NCBI GenBank assembly: GCA_015680685.1
Contig: MNCI01001656.1
Location: 62,001 to 126,000 of the forward strand
Direction of reading: 5' to 3'
DNA length: 64,000 nucleotides
Source of the DNA: Gnetum montanum
Taxonomy: Eukaryota > Plantae > Gnetophyta
Position numbers and translations under genes: made by a program. The stretch's first letter is position 1; the number at the start of each line of letters is the position of its first letter. The notes beneath the pieces are model-generated. The model saw only the letters and a list, made by a program, of their open reading frames with translations, ran no database searches and was not told where the DNA came from. Positions 48 through 24,019 of this stretch are shown here, piece after piece.

Positions 48-1084
48 TGAGACACCACAAAATTTCAGCGTAACACTTTGAAACAAGAAAAAACCAGTGC
101 CTCAACACCTGGAGGTTCAAACATCAGACTAATGTGCATGAATCTTGTCATGCACACCAAGGCCATGCTCAAGTCACGCTACCAATGTACGTGCAGCGTG
201 CGCACAGCCTGCGTACAATGTGTGCAACCTTCGGAGCTTTCAAATCAGGTTAAACTAATCCTAATTTGAATGGGCAAGATTCCCTTAGGGCCCACTAATG
301 ATTATTCCAAGTTTCAGCATCTAAAATCCAAGATTTCAAGTCAAAATTGCACAAATCTTGCTACTCATGCTGAGGTCAAGCCTAGGTCACGTTGATAGCA
401 TGAGTCCAACGTGAGTCTTGCATGAGTCCAGCGTGAGTAACTCAAAATAGCCCTAAAATAGTATTAAAATAGCCTAATTTTGAGGGTGAAGGCCCACTCG
501 AGGTCCACTAATGATTGCTCCAGGTCCCAACCCTCAGAATTCTGATTTTGGACCTGAAAATACACCATTTTCAGCACTTACGCCCAGGTCACGTTGAGGT
601 CATTTTGACAGCATGAGCCCAGCATGAGTTGCCAAAATAACTTGAATCAAGGCACAAACAGGCTCAGACTTAGCTTGCAGGTCATCCACAAAGGTAGGCA
701 GCAGTTACACTTGAAAGATAGGTCTCAAAAAATCACAATTTGATGTGAAATGAACCATCCCAGCTTGCTCACACCTAGGTCACACTGACAACTTGAGCCC
801 AGCATGAGTTGCCAAAAGTGGCCTAAATCCAAGCACAGACAAGCTCAAATTGAACATATAGGATGTCCTCAAGGTTGAATAGTAGTTACACTTCAAAAAC
901 AAGTTTTAAAGGTGAAATCTTGATGTAAAATACATCATTTTTGGTCGATCACACTGAGGTCATGCCCAGGTCATGCGAAGGTCACGTTGGCAGCGTGACT
1001 CCAGTGTGAGCACTGGTCATGACCGAGCCAAAGCACTTTAGACACATGATGAGGGCATGCCAGGACAAGATCAACACACGCTGG
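48..1084 (+). repeat. Element B 5' LTR, left part (interrupted by element A)
   Basis: Colinear with 34503-35527. Contains about four degenerate ~190-210 bp subunits rich in AGGTCAYGC and GCRTGAG. Confidence 0.95.
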
Positions 1085-2387
1085 TGTAACAATAGAAAAT
1101 GTCAGTCACTGGAAACACCGAGTGAAATTATGTGTACACAGTTTTAACCCCGGATCTGTACGAGGGCCGTGCTAGAGAAAAAATGAATCTGAGGTGCCCT
1201 AAACAATCTTGTCGATTAGACAGGGACTTCCTCAATCAGTAAATTTGCTAATGACCATATAATGAGGCAACAACTTAATATGAAAACATGTTATCGATTT
1301 ACGAGAAAACGAGATTTGCTCTAAGATCAGATCTCGAAGGTAGTGAAGGTGGTGTAAATTATGCAAAATGATCGTAAAATTCAATATAAACTAGGTTCAA
1401 CGAATTGAACTTTGAACATGCATGATCCCGAGATCCGGGATCTCCCTTTATAGATAAATAGGATAAAGACAATGGGATTTACAAGCAAACTTCGGTTTGG
1501 ATGAGGTATCCACTACAAATAAGAAGCTAATCAGAGATGAAACAAGCAAAGGCTGATCTACCTTGTTCTAGCCAATCTGGGTGTAAGGGAGTTAGACTTG
1601 AAAGTAAAGTATCTACTAACTTGAAATCTCTGGTCAAAGGCTCATGTAGGTCATCGTCGATGCTCTTCTATTGCCAACTCTTTCTCGCCATCTTACCAGT
1701 CTTCACCAAGATAATTTGTCAATAATTTGCCAACAATTGCCAACTGCTACCAATCTCTGCCCCAAAATTGCCAACCCTTTGAGCATTGTCTACCGGGGTA
1801 TTTATAAGATTAGGGTTAGGAGAAGAACATGGTTTAGATGATGCATGTCCTTAGCCCACAAAATACCGTTGACTTGATGTACCATAGCTGGAGTTTGCAG
1901 CATTATGCTGCGCTACGCTCTAGAGCATAATATGTCATAATCTACCCTTGTTTTTAGTGCTACAGGATTTCTAGAGCTTCAGTAACAAACTATCTTGCAA
2001 ATACGCTGCAATATGCTAGGGAGCGTATCGTGGCGTAAGAACCGCTAATGTTTGAATTTTTCTATTTCTGTTGTTGTGATTAAATCAACTGTCTGCTTGC
2101 GTTACACTACGTTATGCTACATTACGTTGCATAGTTAACACGATGTAATATGCCAAAAGTTAAGATTTTCAATCATGGCCAGCTTGCAAAGTTGAAGTGT
2201 TGTTGCTACACATCCCTCATTTCTGTTCTATCTTCTAGAGTCTACTACGCTAAGTTGTGTAGCATAGCGTAGTGGGCCCTTAGTTGAAAAAAGAAGACTT
2301 TCTGAAATGTGCCACTTGTGAAAATCCTTTACCTAGACTTCGAGACTTTGCTAAATCATCAAGGTCTTGAAATTTCACGGTGTTTCA
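1085..2387 (-). repeat. Element A 3' LTR (1303 bp)
   Basis: TGTAAC...TGTTTCA termini; colinear with 16975-18278; adjacent to the PPT. Confidence 0.95.
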
Positions 2388-2402
2388 ATGGCCCCTCTTT
2401 GT
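2388..2402 (-). promoter_or_regulatory. Polypurine tract of element A
   Basis: Minus strand AAAGAGGGGCCAT lies immediately before the 3' LTR start TGAAACA; near-identical to the B PPT. Confidence 0.85.
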
Positions 2403-3590
2403 TGACATTTTGAGGGCTAGCCCAAGAGACGTCGATAAAGAATATGAAACACCACAAAGATAAAGACACCCACATCGTCCATTGGCTGCTGCTCGGATGT
2501 TTCTCTGTCAAGCCTGGAAGTACGAAGGTTGGGAGGGTAAGGAGTAGAAGAGGAATTTGACAGTTGTGAGGGAGGGAGGTTGGGGGAAGACTCAAGTGTG
2601 AGCAGGATATTTCGTAATCATGTCATTAGACAACTTCTCGTGGGTGTTTTCCTGAGAGGTTACACTGCTGCTATATTGTATATGTGGGGCATGCCTGGAC
2701 GAGTTGTGTTATGCCCGTATGGCCTGGATGAGTTGTGTTTCATCCATTTTGCCTATCTTTGCTTGCTCTTTTTTTTTCAGATGTGTTCCATGAGGCTAGT
2801 TGCATTATGCCAGTTCATGGTTGTGATGGTCATTTACGTGCAAAAGACTTCTTGTACGCTCACATTCTATACAAACAGGAGAAGAGAGTAAGGATGGCTA
2901 TAAGGATAGGGGGAGGAGAAAGTAAGATAAGGTGTTTGGTTGGGGGAAAGGTAGGGTCTGCACTCCCAAGTAGCTAGGCCAGTCTGAGCAGCCATCTCAG
3001 AACGCTGTGATACCTCACCCTCCTAGTGAATGCATTTTTGCACAACGCTATCGTAGTAAGTAACCTACAAAACATAATAAAGAACAGATAACAAAAGTAA
3101 TTGTCCTAATCACTGGGGAGGCTGTTGAAATAAGTGTCATCCAAATTGAAAAGGGGAGTGCAGGCCATGGAGAAGGAATCATAGCAAGAGGCACTAGTCC
3201 CTTTATTGATACCATGGCTCAGGAATTCACCGTCGATAGCCAGATTCATCTTATCCAATTGATTGGGCAAAGAACAAGTCAGATGAATCTGCTAAGCCAG
3301 GGCTTGGTGGTAGTGACGGTCAAAGGCAACCAAGGCTATGGGTGACCATAGTTTCCTTGGAGCTCCAAGTGATAAAGCTGACCCCAAGATTTGCAACTAT
3401 AGAGTGGTCATCATAGCGGGATCTCTGAGGGGTTAGTAGTATGCCTTTTGGTATATCCAATGAATCAGTAGCATGCCAGGAGGGTAGTAGCGCTGCATTT
3501 GTTCCAACATCCTATCTGTTCTACCTGGTAGGGATGCTGTGCAAGAATGATCAGGCTCACTTGCTTCGTGGGTAGTCTATTGGTAGCTTC

Positions 3591-3983
3591 TAGTTTTAAG
3601 TCTTGGTAGACACTTATTGCTGGTTTTAAGTCCTAGTAGACCATGGTCCTGGTTTAAAGTCTGGGCAGACTGAAGTGTGCTATTTTTATGTCATAGTAGA
3701 CAGTGGAAGAACTAGTTTATGATCCTAGCAGACCATGCTGTGGGTGTCAGTTTTGTGTCATGACCCAGGGACAAGTCTGTGCTGGTTTAACATCTCAGTA
3801 GACAGATGCTTACCTTGCCAGTTTCACATTGTGGAAAATAGTTGAAAAATTTGCCAGTTTAGCATCATGGCAGACGTGTGCAAGAAATGCCAGTTTTATG
3901 TCGTAGCTGACGTGTACAACACTGTCAATTTTATGTTGTAGTGGACATTTACTACAACACTAATTTTACATCATAGTAGATGT
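3591..3983 (-). repeat. 3' UTR array of element A: 12 units of a GTC-N6-GAC-NNWAAACY motif, period 29-36 bp
   Basis: Unit starts on the plus strand: 3591, 3621, 3650, 3681, 3713, 3748, 3783, 3819, 3855, 3891, 3926, 3961. The core is conserved and the linkers vary. Confidence 0.9.
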
Positions 3984-4014
3984 TTGTTACCTTGCATTTG
4001 AGCCGAGCTGATGT

Positions 4015-7000
4015 CTAGATGTGCTACTACTTCATGTACATGTGATTCACCAGGTTTGGGAGTTCGTTGTCGTTGATATCTACTAGCTTAAATGCTCTAT
4101 TGTCATATGCGTTGACGACTAGGAAAGGGCCTTCCCAACTTGCAAAGAATTTGCTCACTGGTTCACGAATGGCCTTAAGAACTAAGTCTCCTTTCTTGAT
4201 CGGTTGTTGATGCAAGTTGTAATGATGCTTCTATTTTTGCCTGTCCTGATATCTTTCAATGCTGTTGAGCATCTAGATGCATTTCTCCTAATCCGGGACT
4301 CATTGTGTTGAGTCTCATTTATAATCATGGAGAGGATCATCCATAGTGAGGGAACCTATAGTTCCAGAGGCAACACTGATTCAAACTTGTAGACTAGGCT
4401 GTAGGGTGTCCTACCGGTAGCTGTTCTACATGTTGTACGATAGGCCCATAACACATAGAAGATTTTTTAATGCCATTGTTTTTTGTTGTTGTTGAGCATA
4501 TTTTTCAGTAAATTGATGATCACCTTGTTTGTTGCCTCTACTTAACCATTTGCTTGTGAGTAATAAGGTGAGGAAAAAGATTGCTTGATACCAAGGTTAT
4601 CGTAGAAAGATTTTGTTTCGGTGCTACTAAATTATGGCCCATTGTCGGTCACAATAGTTATGGGAAGCCCAAACCTAGCTACTATGTTATCCAAGATAAA
4701 ATAGAAAAATTGTTGAGATGTAGTCTTTCATAGGGGAATAGCCTCGACCCACTTCGTGAAGTACTTAGTGGTAGTGATAATGAAGCTATGTCCTATAGAA
4801 GACTTAGGCATGATGGGGCCTATGATATCTAGTCCCCATCGTTGGAATGGCCAAGTGATTTGTATAGTATGCAATTCAGTTGGTGACATGTGTATTAAAT
4901 TTGCGTAACATTGGCATGTGTCACATGTCTTAACCTTGGTAAGGTAGTCTCATTCCATGTACAGCTAGTAATACCCTAAGCATATGATTTTAGCGGCCAT
5001 GGCTCGTGAGGCTATGTGTCCTCCACATAGTCCTTCATGGACTTCACTAACTATCCTTTGCACTTGGTTGTTATTAACGTACGTTAGCAATACCCCATCA
5101 AAAGATTGTCTCCATAGAGTATTGTCTCTGATGATGACGTATTGCTTGGCATGCTTGTGGATTGCATCTTTTTGTGTAGGTGTTAACTCGTGCAGTGGTT
5201 CGCCATGCAGAAGGTAGGTTTTAATGTTGTCGTACCATTTTGGTGTTCCTCCCGTATTTAGAGAAGAGATTTGCACCGCTTGAATGATAGGGTCTGTACA
5301 TTCTATCATTAAAGCAGGCAAGGTGGCAAACAAATGTGGTGGCATGTTTAAAGCTAATGTAGCTAGTGCATCAGCTACAGTGTTCTCATTACGCGGCACA
5401 TGCCGGACATCAGTCATTGTGAATTATTTTAGAAGATCTTTAGCCATGTCACAGTAGGGCTACAGGTGCACAGCTTTATAGGCATAGACTCCTATGATTT
5501 GATTGAGAATGAGCATCAAATCACTTCAGATTGCCATGTGTTGAATGTTGAGTTCCTTGGCTATTAACAGTCCTTTGAGGGGCCTCTCGTACTTTGCCAC
5601 ATTGTTCGTACAAGGAAACGCTAGGCGGTAAGCCAATGGGCAAACATCCTTAGGGGAGAGCGTAATGATGGTGGTAGCACTGCCACCTTTGGTAGTTGAA
5701 GCTCCATTGAAGTATAATGTCACTTTGAGGCCTGTTGATACAAGGCTTAAACTATGTACATGTTCATTAGGAAACTTAGGCTCTATCATGGCTTGATCGT
5801 TAACGAGTGATGTTACAAGCTGGTTAGCTATCGCTTGGCCTTTCGTGGAAGATTAGCCAATGTAGTGTAAGTCAAATTCTGTTGTGATGGCTTTCCAGTG
5901 GGCTATCCTACTACTCTCATATAAATTATTTGCAATGGCTGGAAAAATGTTATTTTTGCAAATTATGTTAACTTGGCTGTGGAAAAGATAGTGTCTACAT
6001 TTTTTTAGCGTAAACACCAATGCCAAATAGTTACGCTCTACTTCATTGTACCTCGTTGTGTATGCAAATAGAGCATGAATTAGATAATAAATAGGAACTT
6101 CTAACCCATCATCCCTTTTTTAGCACAACAATGCAGCTATAGAAACATATGAGTTTTCCAGGTAGATGTAGAAAGGATGATCCCTTTGTGGCAAGAAAAT
6201 CATTGGCAAGTGTAGCAGCTCTTTCTTTAGGTTGTCAAATGCACACTGGCAATCTGAGGTCCATTCGAAGTTAACTCCCTTCTTGAGCAGATATTGCATA
6301 GGAAGTAATTTGTCTTTAACTTCAAGATGAACCTCCTAATAAATTGTAACCTACCCTGCAACCCACATAGTTCTTTGAGGTCTATAGATGGTGCCAGGTT
6401 AATGATAGCCTTGACCTTGTCGGGGTCAACTTGTATGCTAGCCTCCGATACCACAAATCCCAACATGCATCTAGTCTTGACTCTGAACACATAGTTTCTT
6501 GGGTTGAGATGTAGTTTGTGCCTATGACATTGTTTAAGGATTATCTCCAGATCCTTAGGGTGATCTTCTGACTTTCTAGATTTGACAACTATGTTGTCTA
6601 CGTAGTCGTTCAATCTCTCTAAGAGGTAATCACTAAAGATGTATGTCATGGCATGTTGATAAGCTACTGTAGTGTTTTTTAGCTTGAAAGGCATCATGGT
6701 GTAACAGAAAGTGCCCCAGGGGATCATGAAAGTTGTAGTCAGTTGATGTTCTGGGTTAATACGAATTTGATTATACCCTAAAAACCCATCCATGAAGGAT
6801 AGTAATGCGTGATCTACCATTGTATCAATAAGTTGGTCAATACCTAGTAATGTGAAATTGTCCTTAATTGTTGCCTTGTTCAGATTGCGAAAGTCTGGAC
6901 AGATGTGTATTCCTCCCATTTTCTTAGAGACAACAACAATGTTTGACACCCAATCTAAATAATCAACCATGTGGATGAAACAAACTAGATATATCTTAGT

Positions 7001-7462
7001 GATTTCATCATGCACTACTAGTGCGATTTCAGGTTTATTCTTCTGTGCTTTCTATTTAACTACTTTGATATGAGGGTCTAAAACTATGTTGTGCTGTATT
7101 AGTCTCGGGTCTAAACCCAACATGTCTTCGTATGATCATGCGAATACTACAATGTTATTTTGGAGCACCTGAAGTATGTTGCTCTACATTTGTTGGTCAA
7201 GGAGAGAACTAACTTTCAGAGTTTTACTTTCTCCTTTGTGCATAACCATAGGGACCTCAGTAAGGGGATTCTCGGTCACATCACCTGCCTCCAGGTCTAA
7301 GGTTCCGGCCAAATGTTCTAGCCAGTCTAGGGATATTTTCGATGTTGCTATGGTTATGTCATAAAGGGAAGCATTAGTTCCTATCAGTGCAAGATTAAGC
7401 TGTCTAATAGTTTCCCAATAAGGACTTGTTAGGGCTAGGGGTGTAAGTAAAGCTTTATCCAT
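4015..7462 (-). pseudogene. pol: Element A pol: RT, RNase H, additional archaeal-type RNase H (aRH), integrase; contains stops and frameshifts
   Basis: RT: SFMDGFLGYNQI, YTMMPF, DYVDNIVVKS. aRH: LYFNGAS...CTNNVAKYE...HVPRNENTVADALA. INT: VHEGLCGGH, WPFQRWGLDIIGP, WEGPFLV. Confidence 0.95.
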
Positions 7463-8680
7463 TTACAAATTAACCTGCAAAAACTACCAAGAACGGAAGT
7501 TATTACATTTTTTTTTGTCAATCTAGTGAAATGATAGAAGGTTTTTTAGAGGTGTGTGTTAAAAAGGTTTCAAGTTTAAGGTCTTAGTAGACCATTACAA
7601 TATACACAGTTTGTAAGAAAATAGTAAGCTAGGTTTCCTAGATATTAGCGTAAGACTTTTTTGTGAACTATGATGAAAGGTATATCAAGGTGTGCCTAGC
7701 ATGTCAAAACAACTAATTTAGGATTTCGTACAGACCGTAGTTAATGCAACCGGATTACGAGATGATGAACTATAGGTTAGTTTAGGGTCTTTTCGGACCA
7801 CAATTAATGAGATATCTACGAGATTAATGTTGTGATCTTCACGCTTCATGTCGCATTGACATACTTCTATTTTAGGAAAGTTCCACATTGATCAGACATG
7901 AAAAATAGCTAGTTTCGACCATCATGTTTATAAGTCGATGGTTCATCCCTAAAGCAGACTGTAAACATCATGAATTTAAATTAGGCTAAAGTAGAAGGAA
8001 AGCAGAAGGAAGGCGTAAGTAGATGATTTTGTAAAGTTGTTTAGGCGTAGCCATGGCACTGAAGACCAAAGGCAAACATGCCAAATTGATGAAGATTGAT
8101 AAAGTGTAGGAGAGTTTGGAGCGGATTTCAAAGGCCTGAGTTGAGACTCAGGAGGCTACCCCACTTGCCCAGTAGGTCATTTTTTACCTTCCCTACATGA
8201 TTGTTATTTTCATTATTATGGCATCATAATTGTATTTGTTTTGAAGATGTGTATGATGTTGAGTGTTGATACCTACTTGTGCGGGCTAAGCTATTATAGC
8301 TTGTAGTATTACCCCCATCGCCGTTGTTAGAGACATACCTTGCACCGTTGTAAGGGTTTGGGTGATCTTGGGTAATATTGTACAAACACAATGCATAACT
8401 AGAGGAAACCAGATGTTGTACCCTTATGTAGTGTAAATAGGATTTCATTGTCTTGCCCGTAACGGTTGCATGTTATGCTGGGATAAAATGCGGTGTTACC
8501 TTTATCACCGTTGTCAGAGATAGACCTTGCACCGTGGCAAGGGTTTGGGTAGTTTTGGTAATGCATTTCTAGTGTAACATGTAATTTTCTGGGAGTTGAG
8601 GCAATGAGAACCTTAGTGTTGCGTAATGGATTTTTATTTCTAAGTTGTTTGTCTAATGGTAATGCATTTTATTGTAAAAG

Positions 8681-11600
8681 GATTATGCTAAAGCCCGTCC
8701 TGATCATCTTGGACATTGTTGGCATTTTGTGCTGTTTACATGTCCCCGTGCCCAATGTTCCTCCTCCTCATGATCGTGTAGGGGAGGAGGTGGTTTGGTT
8801 CCAAAAAGGTGCATAGGAGTTTTTGTAGTTTTTGTTGTGTAATTTCAGCATAATTATCTGGTTACATCTATTGGCTGAGACATCTGCCGCCATTCCGGAG
8901 ATGCTACTGGTTGGATCAACGCAGAGCATCTTAATGTTTCTGGTGGATGGTTCAATCGAAACTGTGAGGGAACAAGACCGTGAACAAAGTGCCAAGTGTT
9001 TGAGGCATTTATCTTAGATCTAGAAGATTCCTAGGTTTGATTGTTATCACGCCTACAACACACTGTTCGTGGCTCATCATCTCACAACCTATTTCCAGAA
9101 TCCACCTAGCATCATGTATTATGTAGGTAAGTAAGTGTTTTCATGGTGTTATGATGTGCTAACCATTGTTTGAATTTGTGTCAAGTATAAACAATTATCT
9201 ACATTCTATGATGTAGGTTTTTTTTATCAATGAGCATGGTCTCCAAGGTGATAAGGACATGTTATCTATGGCTGAAATAGCCATAAAGGAATTCACTTCC
9301 ATCGACAATGTGCATGCCGGTGTCCTAGGACAACTAGGATTTGAAATCCCACACTACCCTGTCCACTATGTCAGATTCTTTTCCAAGTGTAAAAGCTCTG
9401 GATGGCTAGATAAGGAGTGGACTTTGGATCGTCTTATCACCATTGAGGACGTGCAAGAGAAAATCCCACCATTTCTTTTACCCTTTGGATGCGGTAAATT
9501 ACGCTATGGTGGTCTACTGTATAATCTTATGGAATGGGGAAAATGTATGAAATTGTATTATTTTGTTGTGTTGTATAAACTGTTGTTTCATGTTCACAGT
9601 TAGGGAATCACGGGAGGTCACGGCGATAGCTTCTGGGCATGAGGTGAGCAGTCTCTTCTTAGGTTATGGTGACATAAAAAATACAAGATTGGCTCTTCCA
9701 TTGAGCGGCCCCAGCTGCCATAACCAATAAACTCTGGGAAGCTGGACTGATGGAGCTATTTTTGGCTATAACCCTTGATGTTACTGCAGCTGAAATGTTA
9801 ACCCTAGTTGACTCCTTCAGCAAAAATGCCAAGCATCTTGACATGCGCGTGCATAACGTGTGTGTGAGTTTTGATATTAACACTTGACAGTTCATCAACT
9901 TTTTCAGCGTTCCTTCTAATGGCCCTCCAGTAGAAGAAAGGTCAAAGAGGGGTTCTAAGCATCAAAAGGACATAGAAGAGTGGCTAGAGGTTAAAAAGAA
10001 ATCAAAAGACATCCTTGCTGATAAAATCAAGCTAGAGGTGGCTAATATCATTTATCCCCTCTTCTGAGCTTGTGCCTTCCCCAAGATGTTCTCCCAAGGA
10101 AGAATCCTTACCATAGAGTAGGCTCAGATCATGCGGGAGGTCATGGAGGAGGGAACATAGTATAATTGGGCTAGTTACCTCGCTGAAGATCTGCAGGCTA
10201 AAATGGTCAAGCTTCGCAAGAAGCTTGAGTCTCATTTCAATGTGCATTTCATCTTTTTCATAGCTTGCTTTTGGCATTTTGCCGAATTCCTGGTGGTTCA
10301 TAGGGATGGAGTCTAGGTGTAGCAAGATCGTAACTAGGTTTCCAAATCGTGGATTTCCTAGGTTTTTTCTACCATTCAATCCCAAGATTCCCCTGAAGGT
10401 ATCGGAGAGTTGCTTTCACTTACGACTAAGGATCTGGTGGCACCTCCCACACGGGGCCAAGAGAATGTGAGTGGGGTGCTCCCTTCTTACACCAGCAGTG
10501 TGTTGAGGGGGAAGTGCTTGGTAGTGAAAATAGTGACTTCACCAATTCAGCAGAAGAAGCATAATCCAACCGTGGAGTCTACTGGCCCGACTGGTGAAGA
10601 GGGAATTAAGTTTCATAGGAATGATCCTCTGGTTGGTAAGTAGAAGAATGCGTGATTAGTTTATATATGTATTATGCTATGTATAGATGTCATTGCATCA
10701 CGTAGCATTTGTAAAAAGTAAATAAAGTTTTGCTTTGGCTAACTGTGTTGTTTGACAAAGAAAGGAAGAGATGTAGAGGAGTTGATCCCTGAAACAGGGG
10801 CCCTAGTTTTATGGTGTGGAGAAGGGGCCCCAGTTTTAGAAGAGGAAGCCCTTGTTAGTAACATAAGCAGCACACAGGTTCCTATGCCTGAAGGAGAGAC
10901 AGGAGTAGAGGATGCTGAGGTCCTTTTGGATGAGCTAGGAAAAAAGAAGCGGTTTGTCACTAGTGAGTTTGACCTTTCCTCAGAGGGAAAACCTCACGCT
11001 ACTATCCTTGAGGATTTTGTTGAATTAATTTTTGCGTTATCGTAATGCCTCAATCGCCTTGATGCATATCGTGCTATGTCTAACTCATTTTGTTCACGTA
11101 GTAGGCACTTTTGATAATAGTGGTGCACCTTTGTCAATAACCCCAACTTAGCATTGGGATGAGACTCCTGATAAATTCACCTTTATGGAGGGCATCGTGA
11201 ACAATATGATCAATCACCTAGAGCGAATCGATCCTAAAATTGGTACATCACTATCATTACACAGGGATTGTTGGCATTGTGACATTGTGTTATTTTGTTG
11301 CATCTAACTGTTATTTTTTATGTTACAGGATGTCACCTTAGATGGGATCCCAAAGAGCCCATTGACATAGAAACTACCCTTGAACCCTCACTAGAGGTGA
11401 TCGAAGTGCCACGTAGCCTTTATGATGAAATGCATAAATGTATGTTATGCTTGGTCCACTCTTTATGGGAGTGTCAGAACCTCAACGAAGATCTTTGGAA
11501 GAGGTTGCAGAAAGAAGAAAAGGAGAAGATGGCATTAACTAATAGGGTTGAGGACGTGGAGTCTCAAAATGAATTTCTGCAAGCTCGGGAGACCAATGAT

Positions 11601-12483
11601 AAGAATTGGTAGATAGCTATGATTTACTATGCTCATTATTGGACGATTGTCAGAAATAGTGTCCAAGCCAACCGTGAGCTCATTGAGTAACAGATGCAAA
11701 TGGATCTCCTAGCCCAGAAGAACCAAGACTAGAAGGACTTCAACGTGAGGGTCCAAGCATGGGGGCAGGCACAAAAGTACCACAAGCATGTGTATAAGCA
11801 AGAAAGTGCTGCCTACCACCAACATTACAAGGATTCTGCTATTGAAGCATGGTCCCTTTGGCTATGCTTCGATGTCATCGGTGCTTTTGGGACGTAAGAA
11901 AAGTTTTAGGAGAAAGTGACAGTAAGTGCCTCCCTAGAGAGAGAAATAAGCTTCCCTAACGGGGAGACCACTATCCCTTCCTTCTTCCTTGAACCACCCC
12001 GATGGACTCTTGTGGAAAAGGGGAAGGTTAAGGCTGGAACTGATCTAGGAGATGGCGTTTGGTTTGAGCTCACCGAGGATGAGATCATGCAATGCTTGTG
12101 GGTTGGCTTGAAACAAATTCCTTTCACGGTTGGCATAGGACCATCATAGGTAAGTTGTACGACTATTGTATTCTTGTTATGCATAGTTTCAATGGTGATG
12201 CTAACATGTGTTTCATGTCAAATCATAGGATCGACATGAGGAGGGTCCTCATGAAGAGGAGTGTAATGGAGACGATGGTCTTCATGAAGAGGATCTCCAT
12301 GAGGAGGATCCCCACAAAGATGATCAACCTCGTGGCAAGATTCCCCATAAAGAAGAGCTTTGCAAAGAGGATCACCCCCATGAAGAGACACCACTCGAAG
12401 AAGGTCCTTATGAGGATGACCTTCATGAGGCTGAGGTGGAGTTGAATGACACAGGTGAAAGTGGTAACAAAGGAAATGTGTAG
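8681..12483 (+). pseudogene. Antisense intron-containing accessory gene of element A: FCP1/NIF phosphatase-like + PMD-like + coiled coil + His/Glu-rich tail
   Basis: Exon peptides include KPVLIILDIVGIL...VWFQKGA*EFL*FLLCNFSIIIW...YNTLFVAHHLTTYFQNPP; FINFFSVPSNG...YNWASYLAEDL; GCHLRWDP. Introns at 9131-9216, 9494-9599, 10636-~10758, ~11020-11101, 11243-11328, 12150-12228. Homologous exon by exon to 24020-27681. The first exon was not resolved. Confidence 0.85.
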
Positions 12484-12603
12484 CGTAGCTATATTGGCCA
12501 ACATTTTGTTGTAATGAAATGGATTAAAGGATAACATTCTTTGTTTTATGTGATATAAAGATTTTAATTTTTATGAAGTGAAACATATTGTTAGAAGGGT
12601 TAC

Positions 12604-12737
12604 ATGTTTTATGCCATTGCGGGCTGTTAATAGTTTAAGGTCATTTCGGGCTGGGCCATCATAAGCATAAAAGGGTATATAAAATTGCCAATTTTAGGCC
12701 ATAGCGGGCTGTAACTAGTTTAAGGCCATCTTAGGCC
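12604..12737 (-). repeat. Four stem-N6-stem motif copies downstream of the element A gag-PR
   Basis: GCC-ATTGCG-GGC (12613), GTC-ATTTCG-GGC (12640), GCC-ATAGCG-GGC (12698), GGCC-ATCTTA-GGCC (12724). Each is preceded on the plus strand by a TTT tract, as in the 3' UTR array. Confidence 0.75.
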
Positions 12738-12849
12738 ATAGTGCATATGAAAAAGCGTAATAAGGACAATGCAAAAATAGAGAGCGTAAATTGCATAACA
12801 GTAAATAATGTGGACTAATGTAACATGTTACGCCAACGTGTTTCATTGC

Positions 12850-15800
12850 TAACTCTGTAATTGCTTCTTGGTTATCTTTAGTTTTCACGACACGTATGGA
12901 CGAGGAGGCTTATTACAACATTCCTCTATGCTACCATATTCTCCCTGAAAATGTAGTTCAACCCAAGACAAGCTTTCATTGGCCATTGTGTCGGCCTATT
13001 TAGTTGTTGGGGTAGGGGTTTGATCTTCAGGGATTTCAATCTTCAAACCCTATTCTAGTTCCATGTTGTTAACCGCTTGCGGGGTCATCTTATCATCATG
13101 GATGATCACTTCCCCTCATATTTAGGGCAAGTGGATCTCTTGATGAATGGGTGATGAGACTGCTCTTAGTTCAGCCATCCAAGATCTCCCTAAGATTAGG
13201 TTGAAACCAAGAATCTCCTCGATGATGATGAACAATGCGTCTGTGGGGAATTGATCCCCTGCTACAAAATTGATGTGTACCGTTCCCTTGACTTGCAATC
13301 ATGCCCCGTTAAATGACTTCAAACATGACGTTGTTGTGGGATTGATCTGGTCAATCAAACCCAGTTTATGCACTATGGGATATGGAATGACATTGGCAGC
13401 TACCCCGTCATCTACGTGTACTCTCCAGATTCTATATTGACCAACGCAAATAGTGATGAACATGGGTGCTATTGTTACCTAACCCTTTTTTGGGTCATCC
13501 TTAATGGACTCATCATGAAATATTAGTTGGAAAGGCCATGATTGTTCAGCGGTGAGGGGAAGCATAATCAAATGGATTGCTTCTTCATCCGCTGGCAAGC
13601 TCTCATCCATGGGTATGGATGCTAACATGCGAACCATGGCTTCATGATATTTTTGAGATGTCATCAGCAAGTCATAGAGACTCAATGTTGTATTTTTCTA
13701 TTTAAGAGCCTGTTTAACTTACGTAAAAGCATTGAGAAGATCATGCCCACGATCTAGTTGCTTATTACCCTTCTTTTTTTCCATTCGTCCTAAGAGACAG
13801 ATCTCTTAGGGAGGAACAGTTTCTGGTTGAGGGTTGCATTTTATTGGGTTGGGAGAAGATGGTTGCATTTGTGTAGCATCATCTTTTTTAGAAGGTGAGG
13901 TCAAGGATGCTGAGGCGAGGGGTGTAGGCTTGGGAAACCCCAACGCTAGTCGATCCTTGGCTGTGTTACCCGTCATACGTCCTTCTCCTTTCTTGTTAGG
14001 TTGTGATTAGGACGTTGACTTAGAGATTTGCTCCTGCGTAGTAGGAGCAACTGATGGCTTTGGCACCTTGATGATAAAGGGTGTCTTAGGTGCGGGCGTG
14101 GGCTAAGCCATGGCTTTACTGATGGTGGGGTGTGGAACGAAGGTAGGAGATAGGACTCAGAGGATGAAAGGTTATCGCTGAGCTGCACGTTTCGATGTTG
14201 ATAGGCTTATCGTCTGAGACAGGAAAAGAGGCACATCGCCCTCCGTACCCACTACGTTGATAGTGTATCCTACATTATTTACGTTTAACAGGTCTTGGTA
14301 CACATGCATGGATTGGTTTTTTGGATAGATCAGACTATTGCAATCTAGGATCAGTTTACCTTGATCGATTATGCATTGAATGTCACTTTCAATGCCTAGC
14401 AGTAATCTGTGTCATGGCCACACATTTAGTGGTAGTCGCAAAAACGATCCAGCCTGAAGTTCTTGGGGATTGGCGGTTCATTAGGCAAGGCTAAGGAGGG
14501 GTTCTTAAGTAGCTCACAATGTCATCTGTGGCACTTCAGAGCCTCCTCAAACATCATCTTGTGTTGGATATGGCCAGTTCCCAGCAGTTTCTTTAGAAGT
14601 TCTGAAGGCTTTACAGGTAGAGCCATGTATTTTAAGTGATCTTTACACTCAAAATTAGGCTTCAGCTATGGTGGTACCTCAAGGGTGGGTGCTATTTCGT
14701 GATCGATGCTTTTTGAGCTAGTTGTGGTCTCAGCAGGTGCCATAGGTATTTTCTTATTGTTATTTTTCTTTTTGGCCCCTTTGGCCATGGCTGCTACTGT
14801 TGTTGTTGCAGCTTTGCCTTTATCTTTGCTCTTGTTGTGGGAATTTTTGTAGACCACATACACTGGATCTTTGCTAGCCTTGGTTGCATCTTGAATGCTC
14901 TTAGTCTAAGCGAAGGCTTGGCTAAGGGAGTAGGGACTGAGATAATACAGTTTAGACTTGATAAAGTTGTTGACTGCCCCCTTGAAGATTGCCAATAGAT
15001 GAGCCTCTATAATGGGTTCACAGATTTCATTCAAGGTGGCGCTCCACTGCTATATAAACTTTTGAATTGGCTCGAGCGGATCTTTCTTAACTCCCATTAA
15101 TTGGTCCAGCATGACTTCTAGTTTCAGTGTGTATTTGAAACAAGTCACGAACTAAGTTAGCAGCTCTTCTAGGGTTGAGATGGAAGAACGCAAGAGTGCA
15201 CGATACCAGTCTAGAGCTTTACCTATTAGGAACATGGTAAAGACACGGATGATGGTATGTGGTCATTGTTGAAGCAACAATGACTCTGACCTGAAGGTGA
15301 CTAGATGAGCGTTGGGATAGCCTTCCCCATTGTATTTTGTAAAATGGGGAAGTGGCATCCTAGGAGGTAATGACAAAACAGGCACTACCAGACTAACAGG
15401 ATCGTCATGGTAAAAATCCATGACCTATATTATGTTAGAATTGGAAACCTTGAGGCATTTAACCTCCTCAGTAAGGGTTTGAATAAGTTGANGAGGAGGC
15501 AACGACAAAACAGGAACTACCAGACTAACAGGATTGTCATGGTAAAAATCCATGATCTATATTATGTTAGAATTGGAAACCTTGAGGCATTTAACCTCAT
15601 CAGTAAGGGTTTGAATAAGTTGAAAGGCTTGATCTAGACCCATGGATGAAGAGGTTGTTTGTGAAATGGCAGGATGAGCCATGTTGGATTCTGGAATAGG
15701 GGCAATAGCTTGGCTTGTGTGCGATGTTATCAGGACTGCTCTTGTAGGTAGTGCTGCTTGTGACATACACCACCCGGTAGGTGGTGTAGATGGGGCAACA

Positions 15801-16657
15801 ACTGTTGACTGTGCCATGGGATATGTTGTTTGCGTAGCTGGGGGCACAGAAAATGGCCCTACAGTGGGGTTTAGTGCTTGCGGGAGTTGGCCTTGATTGT
15901 GTGGGAGATAAGACATCTGCGTAGACTATGCAACAAGAGGCAATGTATTTGGAGCCCACCACACAATGGTGGCAGGTCCTATCATTAATGGTTATGCAGG
16001 AGCAACAGCTGGGATGGTAGAAGCGGTATGTAACTGTGAAGTAGGCACTACGTGCACATGCGGTGATGTGGGTGTAGGTATACGATGAAACGGGTTAGTT
16101 AACTAGGATTGGAGAGGAATAGTTTGTGAAGGAATGACACTCGGGAAGGTAGCCGAAGAGAAGAAATGCTGATGGGCCACATGCGCAACACGATTGACGG
16201 TAGACAATGAAAGTGGCATAGTGATCATAAACAATAGATTTACACGAGACACCGTGGAGGGAAGGACCATAGCAAAGCTAGCATGAATGCCTCCCTCAGA
16301 GTGGGCATCTAGGTCATCCTACCCATCATGAAGCGCTTCATCATGAAAAAACTCCTCTCATTATTCTATTGATGCCCTGGCCATCAATAGTTGATCTAAG
16401 ATCCACTGTTGTTGATCCGTCAGGGGTATGAAAGTGCCAGGTGAAGGTATGAATTCCTTCCCGTTACAATAGATGAACTCGTATTCGTGTTTTTCTTCGA
16501 GTTCTTATGGATACATGGGCAAATTTGCCTCAAGTTTAGTGTAGAGGAAATTATAATGTTCCCTGCACTGAGCATGTTCCTCAAGCTCTTGGTTTTGGAG
16601 CCTGAGAAATCGGCATGGTCGCATTGGACTGGTTGGCGGCTTGACCATAGGAGGCAT
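12850..16657 (-). pseudogene. gag: Element A gag-protease (3' end approximate)
   Basis: N-terminal RFLRLQ..YNFLYTKLEANLP; capsid-like FTKYNGEGYPNAHLVTF; CX2HX4HX4C-type knuckle near 14400-14440; protease VHVDDGVAANVI...FNLILGRSW. Confidence 0.85.
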
Positions 16658-16940
16658 AACTTGCAGCGTCCAAGGGTTTTTGAGGTTAGCATTGTCAACA
16701 GTAGTGGTTGATGTAGCCTTTCTCTATGTAGTTTGAGAGTAATGACAACAAAGATAAAGATCACAAGGGTAAAGATGAGCTAAGACAAAAATGGACTTTC
16801 TATCCTGTAGGATTTTAGAGGAATCATCAAAGCGACCGATCTATACCACACAATCTCGTAAACAACCACAGAGGTATTACATTTATGTCAATCGAAAATG
16901 GGTACAGAAAACTTATAGGACTACCCATGAAATGCAGATT

Positions 16941-16968
16941 GGAGGTTCAGGCCCTCCTTCTAGCGCCA
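16941..16968 (-). promoter_or_regulatory. Primer binding site of element A, complementary to 28 nt of tRNA-Asn(GUU) 3' end
   Basis: Plus strand GGAGG-TTCAGGC-CCTCC-TTCTAGC-G-CCA has exact T-arm, acceptor strand, discriminator and CCA geometry. It lies 6 nt from the LTR. The tRNA identity is from recalled plant tRNA-Asn sequence. Confidence 0.85.
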
Positions 16969-16974
16969 GAAAAC

Positions 16975-18278
16975 TATAACGACAAAAAACATCGGTCATT
17001 GGAAACACTGAACGAAATTCCGTGTACATAGTTTTAACCCCGGATCCGTACGAGGGCCGTGCTAGAGAAAAAATGAATCCGAGGTGCTCTGAATGGTCTT
17101 GTCAATCAGATAGGAACTTACTCAATCAGTAAATTTGCTAATGATTGTATAATAATGCAACGACTTAATATGAAAACATATTATCGATTTACGAGAAAAT
17201 GAGATTTTCTTTGAGATTGGATCTTGAAGGCAGTGAAGGTGGTGTAAATTATGCAAAATGATCATAAAATTAAATATAAACAAGGTGCAATGAATTGAAC
17301 TTTGAACATGCACAATTCCAAGATCTGGGATCTCCCTTTATAGATAAATAGGATAAAGAGAACGGGATTTACAAGCAAACTTTGGTTTGGACAAGGTATC
17401 TGCTACAAACAAGAAGCTAATCATAGATGAAACAAGCAAAGGCCGATCTACCTTGTTCTAGCCAATCTGAGCAGAAGGGAGTCAGACTTGAAAGTAAAGT
17501 GTTTACTAACTTGAAATCTTTGATCAAAGGCTCCTATAGATCACCATCGATGCTCTTCTATTGCTAACTCTTTCTTGCCGTCTCACTAATCTTGGCCAAG
17601 TGAATTTGTTAAAAATTTTCCAACAATTGCCAACTACTACCAATATTTGTGTCAAAATTGTCAACCCTTTGAGCATTATCTGTCGGGGTATTTATAAGAT
17701 TAGGGTTAGGAGAATAATGTAGTTTAGATGACACGTGTCCTTAGCCCAAAAAATACAATTGACTTGATGTGCCATAGCTGGAGTTTACAGCGTTATGCTG
17801 TGCTATGCTCTAGAGCATAATATGTCATAATCTACCCTTGTTTTTAGTGCTACAGGATATTTAGAGCTTCGGTAACAAATTGTCCTATGGTTACGCTACA
17901 ATACACTAGGGAGTGTATCGTGGTGTAAGAACCGCTAATGCTTGAATTTTTCTATCTCTGTTGTTGCAATTAAATCAACTGTCTGCTTGCGTTATGCTGT
18001 GTTATGCTACATTATGCTGCATAGCATAACGTGGTATAATATGCCAAAAGTTAATATTTTCAATCATGGAAAGCTTGCAAAGTCGAAGTGTTGTTGCTGC
18101 GCATCCCTCGTTTCTGTTCTGTCTTTTGGAGTCTACTACATTGACCTGTGTAGTGTAGCATAGTAGGCCCTTAGCCAAAAAAAGAAGACTTGCTGAAATG
18201 TACCACTTATGGAAATCCTTTACCTAAACTTCAAGAATTTGCTGAATCATTAAGGTCTCGAAATTTCATGGTGTTTCA
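16975..18278 (-). repeat. Element A 5' LTR (1304 bp)
   Basis: Colinear with 1085-2387; the inner terminus CA has mutated to TA; adjacent to the PBS. Confidence 0.95.
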
Positions 18279-18283
18279 GCTGG

Positions 18284-19220
18284 AAACCTTGGTGATGCAA
18301 AAACATCTCAAACAGTTATAGGACCACTCATTTCAGTACCCTATAGTAGCTAGTTCATGGATCAGGAAATTCCAAGTGAGCTAGAATCAAAATCTCATGT
18401 TGTACACTATCATTTTGTTGTAAATTGGCAACATTTGTGAGCTTGTCAAGCTCTTATGCTTCAAATTGTATGCATAAGCATAATGTAAATCAATACACAT
18501 TGTAAGATGTAGTGCATCCAGTCTAAAACATAGTCTACCTATGTCCAGTGCATACGAAGCTATACATCCGACACCTGTCACACGATCCATTTTTCTCTCA
18601 TCTCATAGCCATTGATCTCGTTCACAAATCGTACTCCTGAGCCTAGAGAAATGCATAAATACCCTGTTCATTGACATAAATGGGATTGGCAATTTTGCAA
18701 AAAAGGATAACCTAAAGAGCATTGGTAGGAAACCTTGGACGCTCGAGTGCACGTAATCTCTAGCACTTGAGCATCTACAAATGCTTCATCCTTCATCTCG
18801 GGGCTTGACGCTTGACCTGTCATCTACACACGGAACCAAATTTTGACCAGTGCACTTTATTCTCTAAATCAATACAATACAGTCTTTTACCATCCATTAT
18901 GTTGTTTACATTATTCTAGTTCATTACATTGATTACATTATTCTAGTTCATCATTTTACATTTACATCATTCTATTCCTTTCTTACATTACATCTACGCT
19001 CCATTTACATACTCGTGTTACATTTGTTATGATAACCCCAATGCAAGCCATAGCTTACGCTCAGGGAGTCCTTGGTTGATTTGTGTGCAGATCATCCAAG
19101 GCACTCTACCTTCATTTTTCCAGCTTGCCCTCATGCGAAGGCAGGGTCACTTGTGTATCTTCAGAGATCTTTCGGCATTCATTTTCCTCCAGCCTTACGC
19201 CGATGATTTCAGATGGTACA
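18284..19220 (+). repeat. Element B 5' LTR, right part
   Basis: Colinear with 35528-36465; ends GATGGTACA. The two parts total 1974 bp versus 1963 bp for the 3' LTR. Confidence 0.95.
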
Positions 19221-19225
19221 GAAAT

Positions 19226-19245
19226 TGGTGCTAGAAGGAGGGCTT
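19226..19245 (+). promoter_or_regulatory. Primer binding site of element B (tRNA-Asn)
   Basis: TGGTGCTAGAAGGAGGGCTT, 5 nt after the LTR end. Confidence 0.85.
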
Positions 19246-19562
19246 CACGTTTTCCATCTCGATTAAACATTGAACCATACCAATCTATTTACGATTGTAT
19301 TAAATCCTGCAAAATTTTTACGTTGTTGCAAATACAGTAAATTTTGTAACTGTAGCTAAAAATATTAAGTATAGCATGCACACACTATGAAAATCCAACA
19401 CAGTGTACACACACTATAAAGCCCAACACTACGTACACATGCTGCAAAGCCTAACACTATGTATACACACTGCTACGCACACCACGCACACACACTGCGT
19501 CGCATTGCGCTTATGCTGCGCACAAGCTAGCATATGCACGTTCAGGTTGCGCTCATGCTAAT

Positions 19563-19690
19563 GCTTATGCCCAACTTGCTCAAGCTCAGCTTGCATACGC
19601 CTAGCTTGCTCAAGCTTAGGTTGCATATGCCCAGCTTGCTCAAGATCAGGTTGCATATGCCCAGCTTGCTCAAGCTCAGCTTGCATATGC
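19563..19690 (+). repeat. 30-bp tandem repeat (about 4 copies) in the element B leader
   Basis: Unit approximately GCATATGCCCAGCTTGCTCAAGCTCAGCTT. A looser ~27-bp CACACT-rich repeat precedes it at ~19380-19475. Confidence 0.85.
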
Positions 19691-19728
19691 TGCTCACACA
19701 AATTCAGCTAGCCAAGCTAGTTACACAT

Positions 19729-22700
19729 ATGGAATCTTCTGAAATCAAGGAAACATTGCTCATTTCTAATATTAATGTCAAAATCTCAAATCCTGTGACC
19801 GCAACTGAACCCATAGTCACCGTTGAAGAGATTAATCCTCAAGGGCCAACTTGTTGGTTTCTTAGGTTACAAGGAAAGGAACCCACATATACAATTCTCA
19901 CCCCTAAAGAATACAACTTCATTTGTGTAAAGATCCAAGCTAACCTGCCCATTGATTACATAGACCCTTTAGCATATGACATAATTCCCCGCTCTGAATC
20001 CCATCATGAACTCATATCCCAGCCCCTCATGGAAAGGAATCAAACCTCACGGCAACCCACCATGGAGCCTCAAAACAGAGACGAGGAAGATGATTTTGCA
20101 ACTCAATCTAAGCATGGGGATTCGTACCACACTCTCAGTCCTCATACTTATGCGAACCCATTATTCCACCCTTTCACGGGAGAGACCATGCCTCTTCACA
20201 CATTTAAAAGCACTCAAGCACCTGTCTCTCAATAGGAAGCACCCACCCCCATTCCTACTTTCCCTACAATCAATACCCAATTCAATGCGCCCATCCTTGT
20301 CATTCCTCCAATCACCACATTACCCTCTCTTCCATAAGTACAATCCCAGAAACTCTCCTCTCAAGCTAATATAGGAGCAACCTTCCCACCCCAAATAATT
20401 GGAATGCCCTCCGTAATACCCACTTCTACATCTACTCATTATGTACCACAAGTGCAAATCCAAGGAACACCCTTCACCACTTCAACTCAACAGGTTCAGG
20501 GTGTTTCCTCACAGCTTGTAACTGGGTAGTGGCCCGCACTTGTCATTCAACAGCATCAACCGGCTCATTACAGCATACCACCTGTTACAATCCCATCCAT
20601 GAATGTCCCTCAAGTACAAACATCAACAACCCTACAGTTATCTTTCCCACAAACTACACAACAATCTAACTATTATCATGCTCAATCTAACTAACCAGCT
20701 GGTCCACCTAGTGCCCAAGAATGAGTAGAGGCTAGAAAAATGATGCAAGCATTGACCAATGAGGTAAAGCATCTGAAAATTACAAACACTGAAGTAGTTA
20801 AGGTGATGGATTTTTATCAGGATGATCTGATTAGCTCTTCAGTGCCACCATTGACTCTACCAAAAGGAATTTCATTGCTGCAGTTGACCAAGTATAACGG
20901 AGAGGGAGATCCAAATGCTCACCTAGTGACATTCTGATTAGAGTGTCTATTACTTTAGGCTTGGCCTCATGCAATTCTGCGTGTGTTTGCCATGTTCTTA
21001 ATTGGAAGATCCTTACATTGGTACCGAGCCCTACCACATAACTCCATATCCTCTCTAGAGGATTTGTTACATCAATTCATTACCTATTTTAAGTATAACC
21101 TAAAGCCTGAAGCCATGCTAGATAGTCTAATTCAAATAAAACAAGCACCATTAGAGCCTGTACAAAAGTTCATCCAAAGATGGAGCATTGCTCTTAATGA
21201 ACTTCAAGAGCCTATCCTGGAAATGTATTTACTGACAATCCTCAAGAGTGCCATGAATGATTTCATTAAGTCAAAACTCTATTATCTTAGCGCTCGTACC
21301 TTGAGTCAAGCATTTGTCCAAATCAAAAACATAGAAGAGGCAGCACAAATAAGTCATGTCCTAGCTTACCAAACTTTTAAAAGTCAATATACGAGGAAAG
21401 ATAAGGATAATTCTAAAATGACAGTCGCAGCAGTGGCAAAGACAGCTCGACCCAACAATGCAGGGTAGAAAGGGAAACAACCCACTACCCCCACTAGTCA
21501 TGAAAGAACCATTCCTGCACCTACACTTGAACCCTCCTCTACCCAAATTGCTAACACAAGTCATACTCGTACCTTCGAACAAAAAGATCCTTCCCAGTAC
21601 ACACCCTTACCTGTGAAGCCCTCACAATTATTGGACCAACTTCTAAAGGCTGGGTTGATTCAACATAAGAAGATGTCCCCTACAACATCTCAAAAACACG
21701 ACCGATCCTATGAGTTGGTTAAAAACCCAACATTGGCAATGGCTAATTAACCCCCTGTCCCAAGATGTTTTAGGTTAGACAGATTTTGTGAGTATCACCA
21801 ACAATGTGGGCATGGAACTGATTACTGCTTCGCCCTAAAATAAGACATACAACATATGATTGACAGAGATGAGATAGTCTTTGATGAAGCCAACCTAGTA
21901 AGACCTTAAAATTAGTCTATGGGGGTCTACAAAGATCCTCTTAACACCAAAGAGTCACCCTATGTGATTAACATGATCCATGTCGGCAATGAACAAGACA
22001 TCCCAAAGCATTTTTTCATTTGTGTGCCTGCTAAAACTGTGTCTACACCAACACCTCCACAAGCTCCTTTTTCTACATATACATATCCTACATCGTGAAA
22101 ACCATTCATCATCCAAGTGTACCCTGAGGTTGCAATAGCAAATGTGCCATCGCAAACTTGACCCATTCCATTTGTAATTCAGGTGCCAAAACACTCTGAT
22201 GTGTAACCCCCAACAATTCCCCCATGACCCTCACGAGAACACCTCACTGATAGAATGACCAGAGAATGTTTGGCCAAAGAACGTCATGGTCATCAGTTAG
22301 GATCACCAAAACCCACATTATTGAATGCTGTCCCTATGATTCCAACTACTGATCAACCTAGCATGAGTCATCAAGACAAGAACTCGAGAGTGTCTAGCAT
22401 CCCAAATCTAACAGCTACAATTAATAACGTAAAAACTCTTTCGTAAGAGATACAAATGTTGGGTCAAATGGATCAAGTTTCGACAGGTAAAAACATTCCA
22501 AATAGAAAATACTTGGCCAGTGCCCTGACCCAAGTTACGTAGGCCTTAAAACAAAAGAACACCTCTGTAAGCCTATATGACCTAGTGATGACCTCCCTAG
22601 TACATTGGGAAGCTCTAGTGCATATGTTGACTTCAATCCCTATTAGTGAAGACCTTCCTACAAATGAACCATCCATTTATGTTGTATTATCTCCACATCA

Positions 22701-23445: not shown

Positions 23446-23463
23446 ATAAAAAACTAGGATGAA

Positions 23464-23702
23464 CCACCACACATCCAGAATGATGTTAAACTACCACACA
23501 TTTGGAATGATGTTAAACTACCAAACATCTGCAATGACATTAAACTACCAAACGTCTGCAACGACGTTAAACTAGCCATGGTCAGAGATGACCAGTTCTT
23601 CTAAATTCACCGAAACAACTACTGTCTCGCTTTCTTTGACAAAGATGCAATAGTCCACCATGACTTTAAATTGATATGTGTGGCCCAAAATGGCCTTAAA
23701 AT
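23464..23702 (+). repeat. Motif array after the element B gag-PR stop: four 27-bp units plus 2-3 dispersed copies
   Basis: CATC-CAGAAT-GATG-TTAAACTA; CGTC-TGCAAC-GACG-TTAAACTA; GTC-CACCAT-GAC-TTTAAATT (23653); GGCC-CAAAAT-GGCC-TTAAAAT (23682). Confidence 0.85.
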
Positions 23703-24019
23703 ATAGCATAATACATTACCATTTTACCAAAATCTTGCTACGGCATTCTCTCTTACATTTTGCAAATTACAATTTTAGTTTATCTTATGTTTACCAGTCA
23801 TGATTCCAGTTTGCGTTTACGTTCAAAAATAAACTTGAAAAAAAAAACAAAACAAAAGATATAAATATATATAATATGGAGTGTTAACATGGCAATAGGA
23901 TGATGACATATTACACCATGATCATGGTTATATTTGTTCTCATACATCCCAAAAAACAACAAAATGAGCTGAAAAACTAAAGAAAAACTGACAAAAAATG
24001 AAAAGACTGACAAGCTAAA

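Follow-up and report, generated by a model that had tools for sequence, protein, structure and literature searches.

Introduction

The extra open reading frames (ORFs) described for plant Ty3/gypsy long terminal repeat (LTR) retrotransposons are placed upstream of gag or downstream of pol, before the 3' LTR; they carry a PMD domain, a Transposase_28 domain or no domain, and have been described without introns (PMC4408406, PMC6317226, PMC7264820, PMC9289625). A 2025 review names Ogre and EVADE as notable exceptions to the intron-less plant LTR elements (PMC12786077). Here we describe, in a 64,000-nt stretch of Gnetum montanum DNA (contig MNCI01001656.1, positions 62,001-126,000, assembly GCA_015680685.1; hereafter the window), a gene with several introns that lies antisense between the gag-protease (gag-PR) and reverse transcriptase (RT) regions of two related retrotransposons, A and B, and that is probably an accessory gene of a deep Tat-type Ty3/gypsy lineage.

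The extra ORF of Tat/Ogre elements that encodes PMD and a coiled coil (PMC4408406, PMC6317226) is likewise an additional protein gene of the Tat lineage, conserved across families, in which a large N-terminal or central domain is followed by a coiled coil. It differs in being a single sense ORF upstream of gag, whereas the present gene is antisense, occupies the PR-RT gap and contains at least five introns; PMD/DUF7745 homology was also tested for the present gene and was not found. The antisense ORFs located between pol and the 3' LTR (gene23 of maize Grande, and those of rice RIRE2 and Silene Retand; PMC7264820) also occur in Tat-clade elements and are presumed to have their own promoter. 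Descriptions set them apart from the present gene, which lies upstream of RT: they are placed downstream of pol and described without introns. Retand-type antisense ORFs carry Transposase_28 (PMC6317226, PMC4408406).

Ogre elements have an intron at the same location, between gag-PR and RT, and there too gag-PR and RT-RNase H-integrase (RT-RH-INT) occupy separate frames. According to Neumann 2003 and Steinbauerova 2008, as cited in PMC6317226 and PMC4408406, the intron is in sense orientation, and the spacer averages 274 bp and holds no gene. Ogre, as those citations present it, thus has a short sense intron where A and B have a 5.5-6.3 kb gap with a gene on the opposite strand. The present gene is the extra-ORF theme of Tat elements in a new form.

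HBZ of human T-cell leukaemia virus type 1 (HTLV-1), an animal retrovirus, is a spliced antisense gene with its own promoter and one intron, starting in the 3' LTR. The two genes would be alike in logic, being antisense, with a promoter of their own and with intron sequence left unspliced in the genomic RNA. They differ in that HBZ has a single intron and a 3' LTR start, and there is no sequence relation between them. Antisense retroviral genes are mentioned in PMC7264820. A preliminary description of this DNA knew of no multi-intron gene at the PR-RT position, and we found no description of that antisense layout in the plant LTR-element literature examined; an earlier description is possible, the survey of Steinbauerova et al. 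2011 lying outside that literature.

The antisense gene and its host elements

The window consists of plant-like repeat DNA. Element limits were drawn from self-blastn of the window and from reading of the element ends, which gave three related elements: A, B and a fragment, C (Table 1). Domains were assigned by Pfam on stop-free pieces in B and placed by tblastn in A. Both elements have the order gag, aspartic protease, long gap, RT, RNase H, an extra RNase H (aRH, matched by RVT_3) and integrase, with the RVT_3 match of B (E 1e-16) falling between RVT_1 and rve. A protease fused to gag and an extra RNase H between RH and integrase form the Tat arrangement known from flowering plants (PMC4408406, PMC6317226). 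The window elements show these features together with paired LTRs, a primer-binding site (PBS) and a target duplication, the last read for A. In A the PBS adjoins the 5' LTR, and B has a similar one. The two LTRs of A (~1.3 kb) are 86.4% identical by self-blastn, with a Kimura two-parameter (K2P) distance of 0.154, and those of B (0.94 kb) are 89% identical, with a K2P distance of 0.119. A and B are two old, decayed elements of one deep Tat-type Ty3/gypsy lineage. Their RT cores are 63% identical and their gag-pol blocks 46-59% identical by tblastx; their LTRs have no blastn similarity (best E 0.52), in keeping with the earlier remark that they look unrelated.

That the gene is lodged inside retrotransposons, as first proposed, is borne out by these complete LTR elements. 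A is flanked by a 5-bp direct repeat, GCTGG, at 1080-1084 and 18279-18283; this target duplication and the paired LTRs show that the whole unit, introns included, went through retrotransposition.

The gag-PR and pol frames are ~5.5 kb apart in A and ~6.25 kb apart in B, close to the 5.5-6 kb first reported, and conserved blocks occupy the greater part of this gap. When the gene copies were compared by tblastx, eight collinear blocks aligned the plus strand of A (8688-12047) with the minus strand of B (27677-24319), in each element the strand opposite gag-pol, at 32-43% amino acid identity and 35-132 bits. Matches in the opposite orientation across the same DNA reached at most 48 bits. At the DNA level blastn (E<=0.01, word size 7) found no similarity between the two copies. 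These comparisons uphold the earlier claims of an antisense gene between protease and RT in both elements, with clear similarity at the protein level and little in DNA.

Long conservation of the protein had also been proposed, and codon comparison of A with B agrees with it. The proportion of nonsynonymous differences (pN) is 0.44 and that of synonymous differences (pS) 0.76; pS is saturated, so the pN/pS of 0.58 is not a true ratio of substitution rates (dN/dS). This value is the lowest of the six frames, the other five giving 0.67-0.90; gag-pol gives 0.32. In-frame stops number 2.0 (A) and 1.3 (B) per 100 codons of the gene; the conserved gag-pol blocks of these copies have 1.9 and 1.8. A stop density like that of gag-pol suggests that the gene has been decaying for as long as gag-pol and no longer, and hence that it was probably open when each copy inserted. 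Chance similarity was rejected as the cause of the blocks, and a sense-strand feature was rejected as the source of their conservation. The feature is real and ancient, and is now decayed in both copies.

Exons and introns of the gene

Each break between blocks was examined in three frames in both copies. Four introns (i1, i2, i3 and i5) have GT..AG ends and interrupt the same codon position in the same phase in A and B, phase 2 for i1 and phase 1 for the others; they span 81-129 nt. Intron 1 follows PPSIMYYVGK in A and PPRTVYRIDR in B, and in A it fits only with a 2-nt length change in the run of eight T that opens exon 2. Intron 2 follows PFGC (A) or PFAN (B) plus one base, intron 3 DPLV or LPGA plus one base, and intron 5 DPKI or HPEL plus one base. 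The shared phases that had been noted at three of these motif pairs (PPSIMYYVGK/PPRTVYRIDR, PFGC/PFAN and DPKIG/HPELG) were therefore recovered when the junctions were read in both copies. Exon 3 starts earlier than its tblastx block, with a similar short in-phase motif right after the i2 acceptor in each copy; aligned over 300 columns, it is 34% identical between A and B. On the gene strand, the introns have 31% GC and 41-48% T and the exons 43-45% GC and 28-30% T, a composition that reads as the strand-specific U-richness typical of plant introns.

At the end of exon 6 an in-frame stop occurs at the same aligned position in A and B, followed by GT and a T-rich, intron-like stretch. Downstream of this shared stop, where an exon 7 had been proposed, there is no similarity between A and B. 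Since exon 7 is not conserved and the stop is shared, only six exons with five introns are counted as secure, and the gene more likely ends at that stop. The preliminary description, which gave at least 7 exons and about 1,000 codons, is thus held up for six exons and ~978 codons (secure exons), and not for the seventh. Its six introns at matching positions shrink to the four matching GT..AG introns: intron 4 could not be placed, and the sixth would come directly after the shared stop.

Table 1. Features of the antisense gene, its host elements and their surroundings, in window coordinates
Feature	Position	Strand	Remarks
A exon 1	8685-9130	+	conserved from 8688; 4 in-frame stops; tblastx 83 + 35 bits vs B
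A intron 1	9131-9216	+	86 nt; GTAAGT..TAG; phase 2
A exon 2	9217-9493	+	stop-free; tblastx 42 bits
A intron 2	9494-9599	+	106 nt; GTAAAT..CAG; phase 1
A exon 3	9600-10635	+	largest, ~345 codons; 9 in-frame stops; frame shift near 9690; 67 + 89 bits
A intron 3	10636-10764	+	129 nt; GTAAGT..AAG; phase 1
A exon 4	10765-11020	+	acidic, open; 3' end uncertain
A intron 4	11021-11151	+	limits ambiguous; weak donor GTTGAA, acceptor TTAG at 11151
A exon 5	11152-11242	+	tblastx 40 bits, 43% identity
A intron 5	11243-11328	+	86 nt; GTACAT..CAG; phase 1
A exon 6	11329-12149	+	helical region; 5 in-frame stops; TAG 12147-12149; 132 + 51 bits
A possible intron 6	12150-12228	+	GTAAGT..TAG; not confirmed
A possible exon 7	12229-12483	+	not confirmed
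B exon 1	27232-27677	-	1 in-frame stop; marginal NIF match
B intron 1	27151-27231	-	81 nt; GTATGC..CAG; phase 2
B exon 2	26879-27150	-	2 stops
B intron 2	26780-26878	-	99 nt; GTGAAT..CAG; phase 1
B exon 3	25787-26779	-	single frame throughout; 6 stops
B intron 3	25695-25786	-	92 nt; GTAAGT..TAG; phase 1
B exon 4, intron 4, exon 5	25111-25694	-	acidic exon 4 from 25694; intron 4 ~25395-25206, limits ambiguous; exon 5 to 25111
B intron 5	25017-25110	-	94 nt; GTATGT..TAG; phase 1
B exon 6	24235-25016	-	TGA 24235-24237; 2 in-frame stops; T-rich intron-like 24234-24114 follows
Spacer in A	7462-8684		1.2 kb, between diverging starts of antisense gene and pol frame
Spacer in B	27678-29548		counterpart of spacer in A
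Opening of pol frame, A	7462-7510	-
Opening of pol frame, B	29487-29560	+
Opening of pol frame, C	39410-39500	-
Element A	1085-18278	-	complete Tat-type LTR retrotransposon
A LTRs	~1085-2387, 16977-18278	-
A gag	14813-15262	-	tblastn
A PR	13173-13709	-	tblastn
A RT	6230-7051	-	tblastn
A aRH	5085-5636	-	tblastn
A INT	4560-5042	-	tblastn
Element B	18281-36465	+	Tat-type LTR retrotransposon
B LTRs	18281-19220, 35525-36465	+
B gag	20959-21465	+	Pfam
B PR	22543-23073	+	Pfam
B RVT_1	30344-30649	+	Pfam
B RVT_3	31335-31898	+	Pfam
B rve	31938-32423	+	Pfam
Fragment C	36480 to ~40200		RT to integrase only
Truncated element D	48-1074		3' interior; upstream of B

The predicted protein

Homologue and domain searches were run exon by exon on the unrepaired copies, with no consensus frame. 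Pfam scans of 30 stop-free pieces, taken up to E 10, returned nothing except a marginal match to NIF (PF03031) on exon 1 of B (14.1 bits, E 0.038, below the cut-off of 21.8), with no match in A; unrelated families gave chance matches of similar E in the same scans. The site aligned with the catalytic DxDx(T/V) motif reads D-I-V-G in A and E-L-V-G in B, so that a NIF-like module, if real, would be inactive. A scan of NCBIfam gave nothing, and sequence profile searches of the PDB gave no phosphatase. A fold model of the 83-amino acid (aa) first half of exon 1 is all-helical and, at a mean predicted local distance difference test score (pLDDT) of 59 and with a stop splitting the domain, is too poor for use. 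With the match below threshold and the motif missing in both copies, a NIF or FCP1/SCP phosphatase identity is not supported.

A PMD in exon 3 likewise gained no support: a hidden Markov model (HMM) of six Ogre-type ORF1 proteins matched neither the window ORFs nor the exons (with X at stops), and revealed no DUF7745/PMD ORF anywhere in the window. Comparison with PMD by hhalign gave a probability of 0.14, at a sensitivity limited by the two-sequence profile and the short pieces. The Pfam scans likewise detected no transposase or RT domain in the conserved blocks. A language-model search placed one 76-aa piece near plant transposon clusters (PF20167, ATHILA ORF-1) with a score of 0.88-0.90, which is a lead only, and gave nothing for a second piece.

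The AlphaFold2 model of a 145-aa exon-6 piece of B has two long helices, at residues 28-88 and 93-144, with pLDDT 85-93 over residues 31-80 and a mean of 69.8; these helices support a predicted C-terminal coiled coil. No homologue of a 155-aa exon-6 piece was found among 5.8 billion proteins. An A/B exon-6 profile had no relative among 1.84 billion representative proteins, where one repeat protein (P0001) came up spuriously, and an A/B profile of the first part of exon 3 gave no homologue. DNA-pattern scans of metagenome and viral contig collections were also without a match. At the sensitivity reached with single-exon queries, the predicted protein is an orphan.

Relatives and phylogeny

The closest RTs among 5.8 billion proteins, legume and pine elements among them, are only 40-50% identical to that of A. 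For comparison, 80 related Tat loci were taken from metagenome contigs; tblastx of both gene copies against these loci gave no match. One measure puts RT 6.2 kb from PR in A and 6.9 kb from it in B; this distance could be measured in 35 of the 80, and is 0.7-1.4 kb in 34 of them and 3.1 kb in the remaining one. A sense DUF7745/PMD ORF stands upstream of gag in 17/80 loci, one of which also has a coiled-coil match; it is the PMD and coiled-coil extra ORF already described for Ogre.

In the RT tree that the preliminary description had called for, A, B and C form their own Tat-type clade with support 100. Neither the 69-row clade in which the legume elements fall (support 98) nor the pine-type clade, where integrase precedes aRH, includes them; deeper placement is insecure, as the tree comes from a quick search and is drawn with midpoint rooting. 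The elements stand apart from the Ogre subclade by an RT outside the legume-holding clade, by the 5.5-6.3 kb gap and by the absence of a PMD ORF from the window.

Two groups among the related loci deserve mention for themselves: (i) L017, L018, L035, L056 and L062 have the order RT, integrase, extra RNase H, group with pine proteins and fit the gymnosperm TatIII; their RT identity to A (45-49%) is on a par with that of the Ogre-type loci. (ii) L038 (2790-12011) and L042 (3857-11095) hold a Tat-type element with one open frame of up to 3074 aa, in which a 3'-5' exonuclease domain within the first 1000 residues (PF01612, E 2e-15) precedes the PR and RT matches. PF01612 is not among the extra domains of retrotransposons in the plant Ty3/gypsy literature examined.

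Expression of pol

The antisense gene and the pol frame start on either side of a spacer and diverge from it. The spacer has no similarity between A and B by tblastx; by its position it is a candidate internal-promoter region. An ATG situated 10-12 nt past an acceptor-like AG begins the pol frame of A, B and C. In A this AG and the ATG are separated by a TAA in the frame of the ATG; the ATG of B is shifted by one base relative to pol. Where gag-PR ends, no conserved sense donor was identified. In copies too decayed to decide the matter, the layout of pol would fit separate initiation better than an Ogre-like fusion. Downstream of integrase, tblastx found nothing conserved between A and B beyond short matches.

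With gag-PR and pol ~6 kb apart, how pol is expressed and packaged becomes a question; the antisense gene forces a changed expression of pol.

Probable origin and role of the gene

The explanation that we hold to be probable is an accessory gene of a deep Tat-type Ty3/gypsy lineage, carried antisense between gag-PR and RT. An internal promoter, placed in the 1.2-1.9 kb spacer between the start of the gene and that of pol, would drive transcription of the gene, and the host spliceosome would remove five or more short, U-rich GT..AG introns. Translation would yield a ~980-residue protein with a long central domain of no assigned family, an acidic stretch and a C-terminal coiled coil. Transcription, splicing and translation are in this respect all inferred from the reading of the two decayed copies. 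The genomic RNA would be the other strand, on which the same introns read CT..AC and would stay unspliced; they would thus be copied through each round of reverse transcription and inherited with the element. That antisense orientation lets the introns survive had been put forward in the preliminary description, and it is a sound inference from the arrangement of the strands. By analogy with other Tat extra-ORF proteins, the protein would serve the element, most likely by acting in trans in replication or in defence against host silencing.

Several observations weigh against an accessory gene. The copies in A and B are pseudogenes that contain 18 and 11 in-frame stops, respectively, and saturation of the synonymous sites makes dN/dS inestimable for the pair. 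An ATG begins the gene at 8685 in A, and B has none at that place. Intron 4 is ambiguous, with weak candidate donors and phases that differ between the copies. The acidic exon 4, open in both, shows no significant similarity between A and B, as 58 of 200 shuffles score as high. Finally, with no homologue found in any search, any function is a guess.

One rival explanation is a neutral passenger: the ancestor of A and B would have captured a host gene with its introns a single time, and the gene would since have been carried along and decaying, of no use to the element. The review literature documents gene capture by LTR elements, no homologue or domain ties the protein to transposition, and exon 4 and the 5' and 3' gene ends are not conserved between A and B. 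Yet where DNA similarity has gone, one frame is still 34% identical and the position and phase of four splice sites are unchanged; stops are no denser than in gag-pol; and a 3.5-kb neutral insert would not stay so across many error-prone rounds of replication. We therefore regard neutral carriage as unlikely. The AG followed by ATG that heads the pol frame in A, B and C raises another reading, in which a large sense intron, of the kind that Ogre elements splice between gag-PR and RT, joins gag-PR to pol and the antisense gene is only a secondary tenant. The TAA between AG and ATG in A would block fusion through that acceptor in the A copy, and the gag-PR end lacks an identified conserved sense donor; such an intron would moreover be compatible with an accessory gene and no replacement for it. 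As an explanation of the locus it seems to us quite improbable.

That A and B each received a separate, reversed insertion of another mobile element was rejected and has very little probability. Nesting is common in the window, and A is itself nested, but the blocks share position and orientation in both elements, are not bordered by terminal repeats or target duplications, have diverged about as far as the host elements and are without a transposase or RT domain. One may also extend the accessory gene into a scheme of three expression units, namely an LTR-driven gag-PR and, diverging from one spacer, the multi-intron antisense gene and a pol with its own ATG, the antisense product combining a dead phosphatase-like module, an orphan domain and a coiled coil to counter silencing; taken with all its parts, this scheme is speculative and rather unlikely.

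An accessory gene in this place would matter in several ways. Recent reviews present plant LTR retrotransposons as generally without introns, and the extra ORFs that they list are at the element ends. Here reverse transcription has passed on a gene of five or more introns for so long that DNA similarity between families vanished; this long inheritance of a split gene suggests that antisense orientation gives a retroelement room for a split gene of the host style. An orphan protein kept by a successful transposon lineage is a candidate new factor in the conflict between transposon and host.

Further features of the window

The insertion site of element A coincides with the first bases of the LTR common to B and D, a truncated element of which the 3' interior remains. 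Positions 48-1074 correspond in sequence to the 3' interior of B, and with A removed the LTR at 18281-19220 comes next, so D and B look like a tandem; B is probably its second unit, sharing its 5' LTR with the truncated D. The 3' end of B (34503-36465) belongs to the same tandem reading, alongside 48-1074 and 18281-19220. Although A is nested and should be the younger element, its LTR divergence (K2P 0.154) exceeds that of the LTR pair hosting it (0.119); the origin of B in the D-B tandem or uneven decay may be the cause. Transitions outnumber transversions five to one in the LTRs of A.

A long PBS of at least 20 bases is common to A (16920-16976, minus strand) and B (19221-19270, plus strand) despite their unrelated LTRs. 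Farther along, the window is very AT-rich from 42 to 60 kb and includes a run of 584 N at 53949-54532. A further RT fragment, 41% identical to A, lies on the plus strand at the right end of the window (63602-63981).

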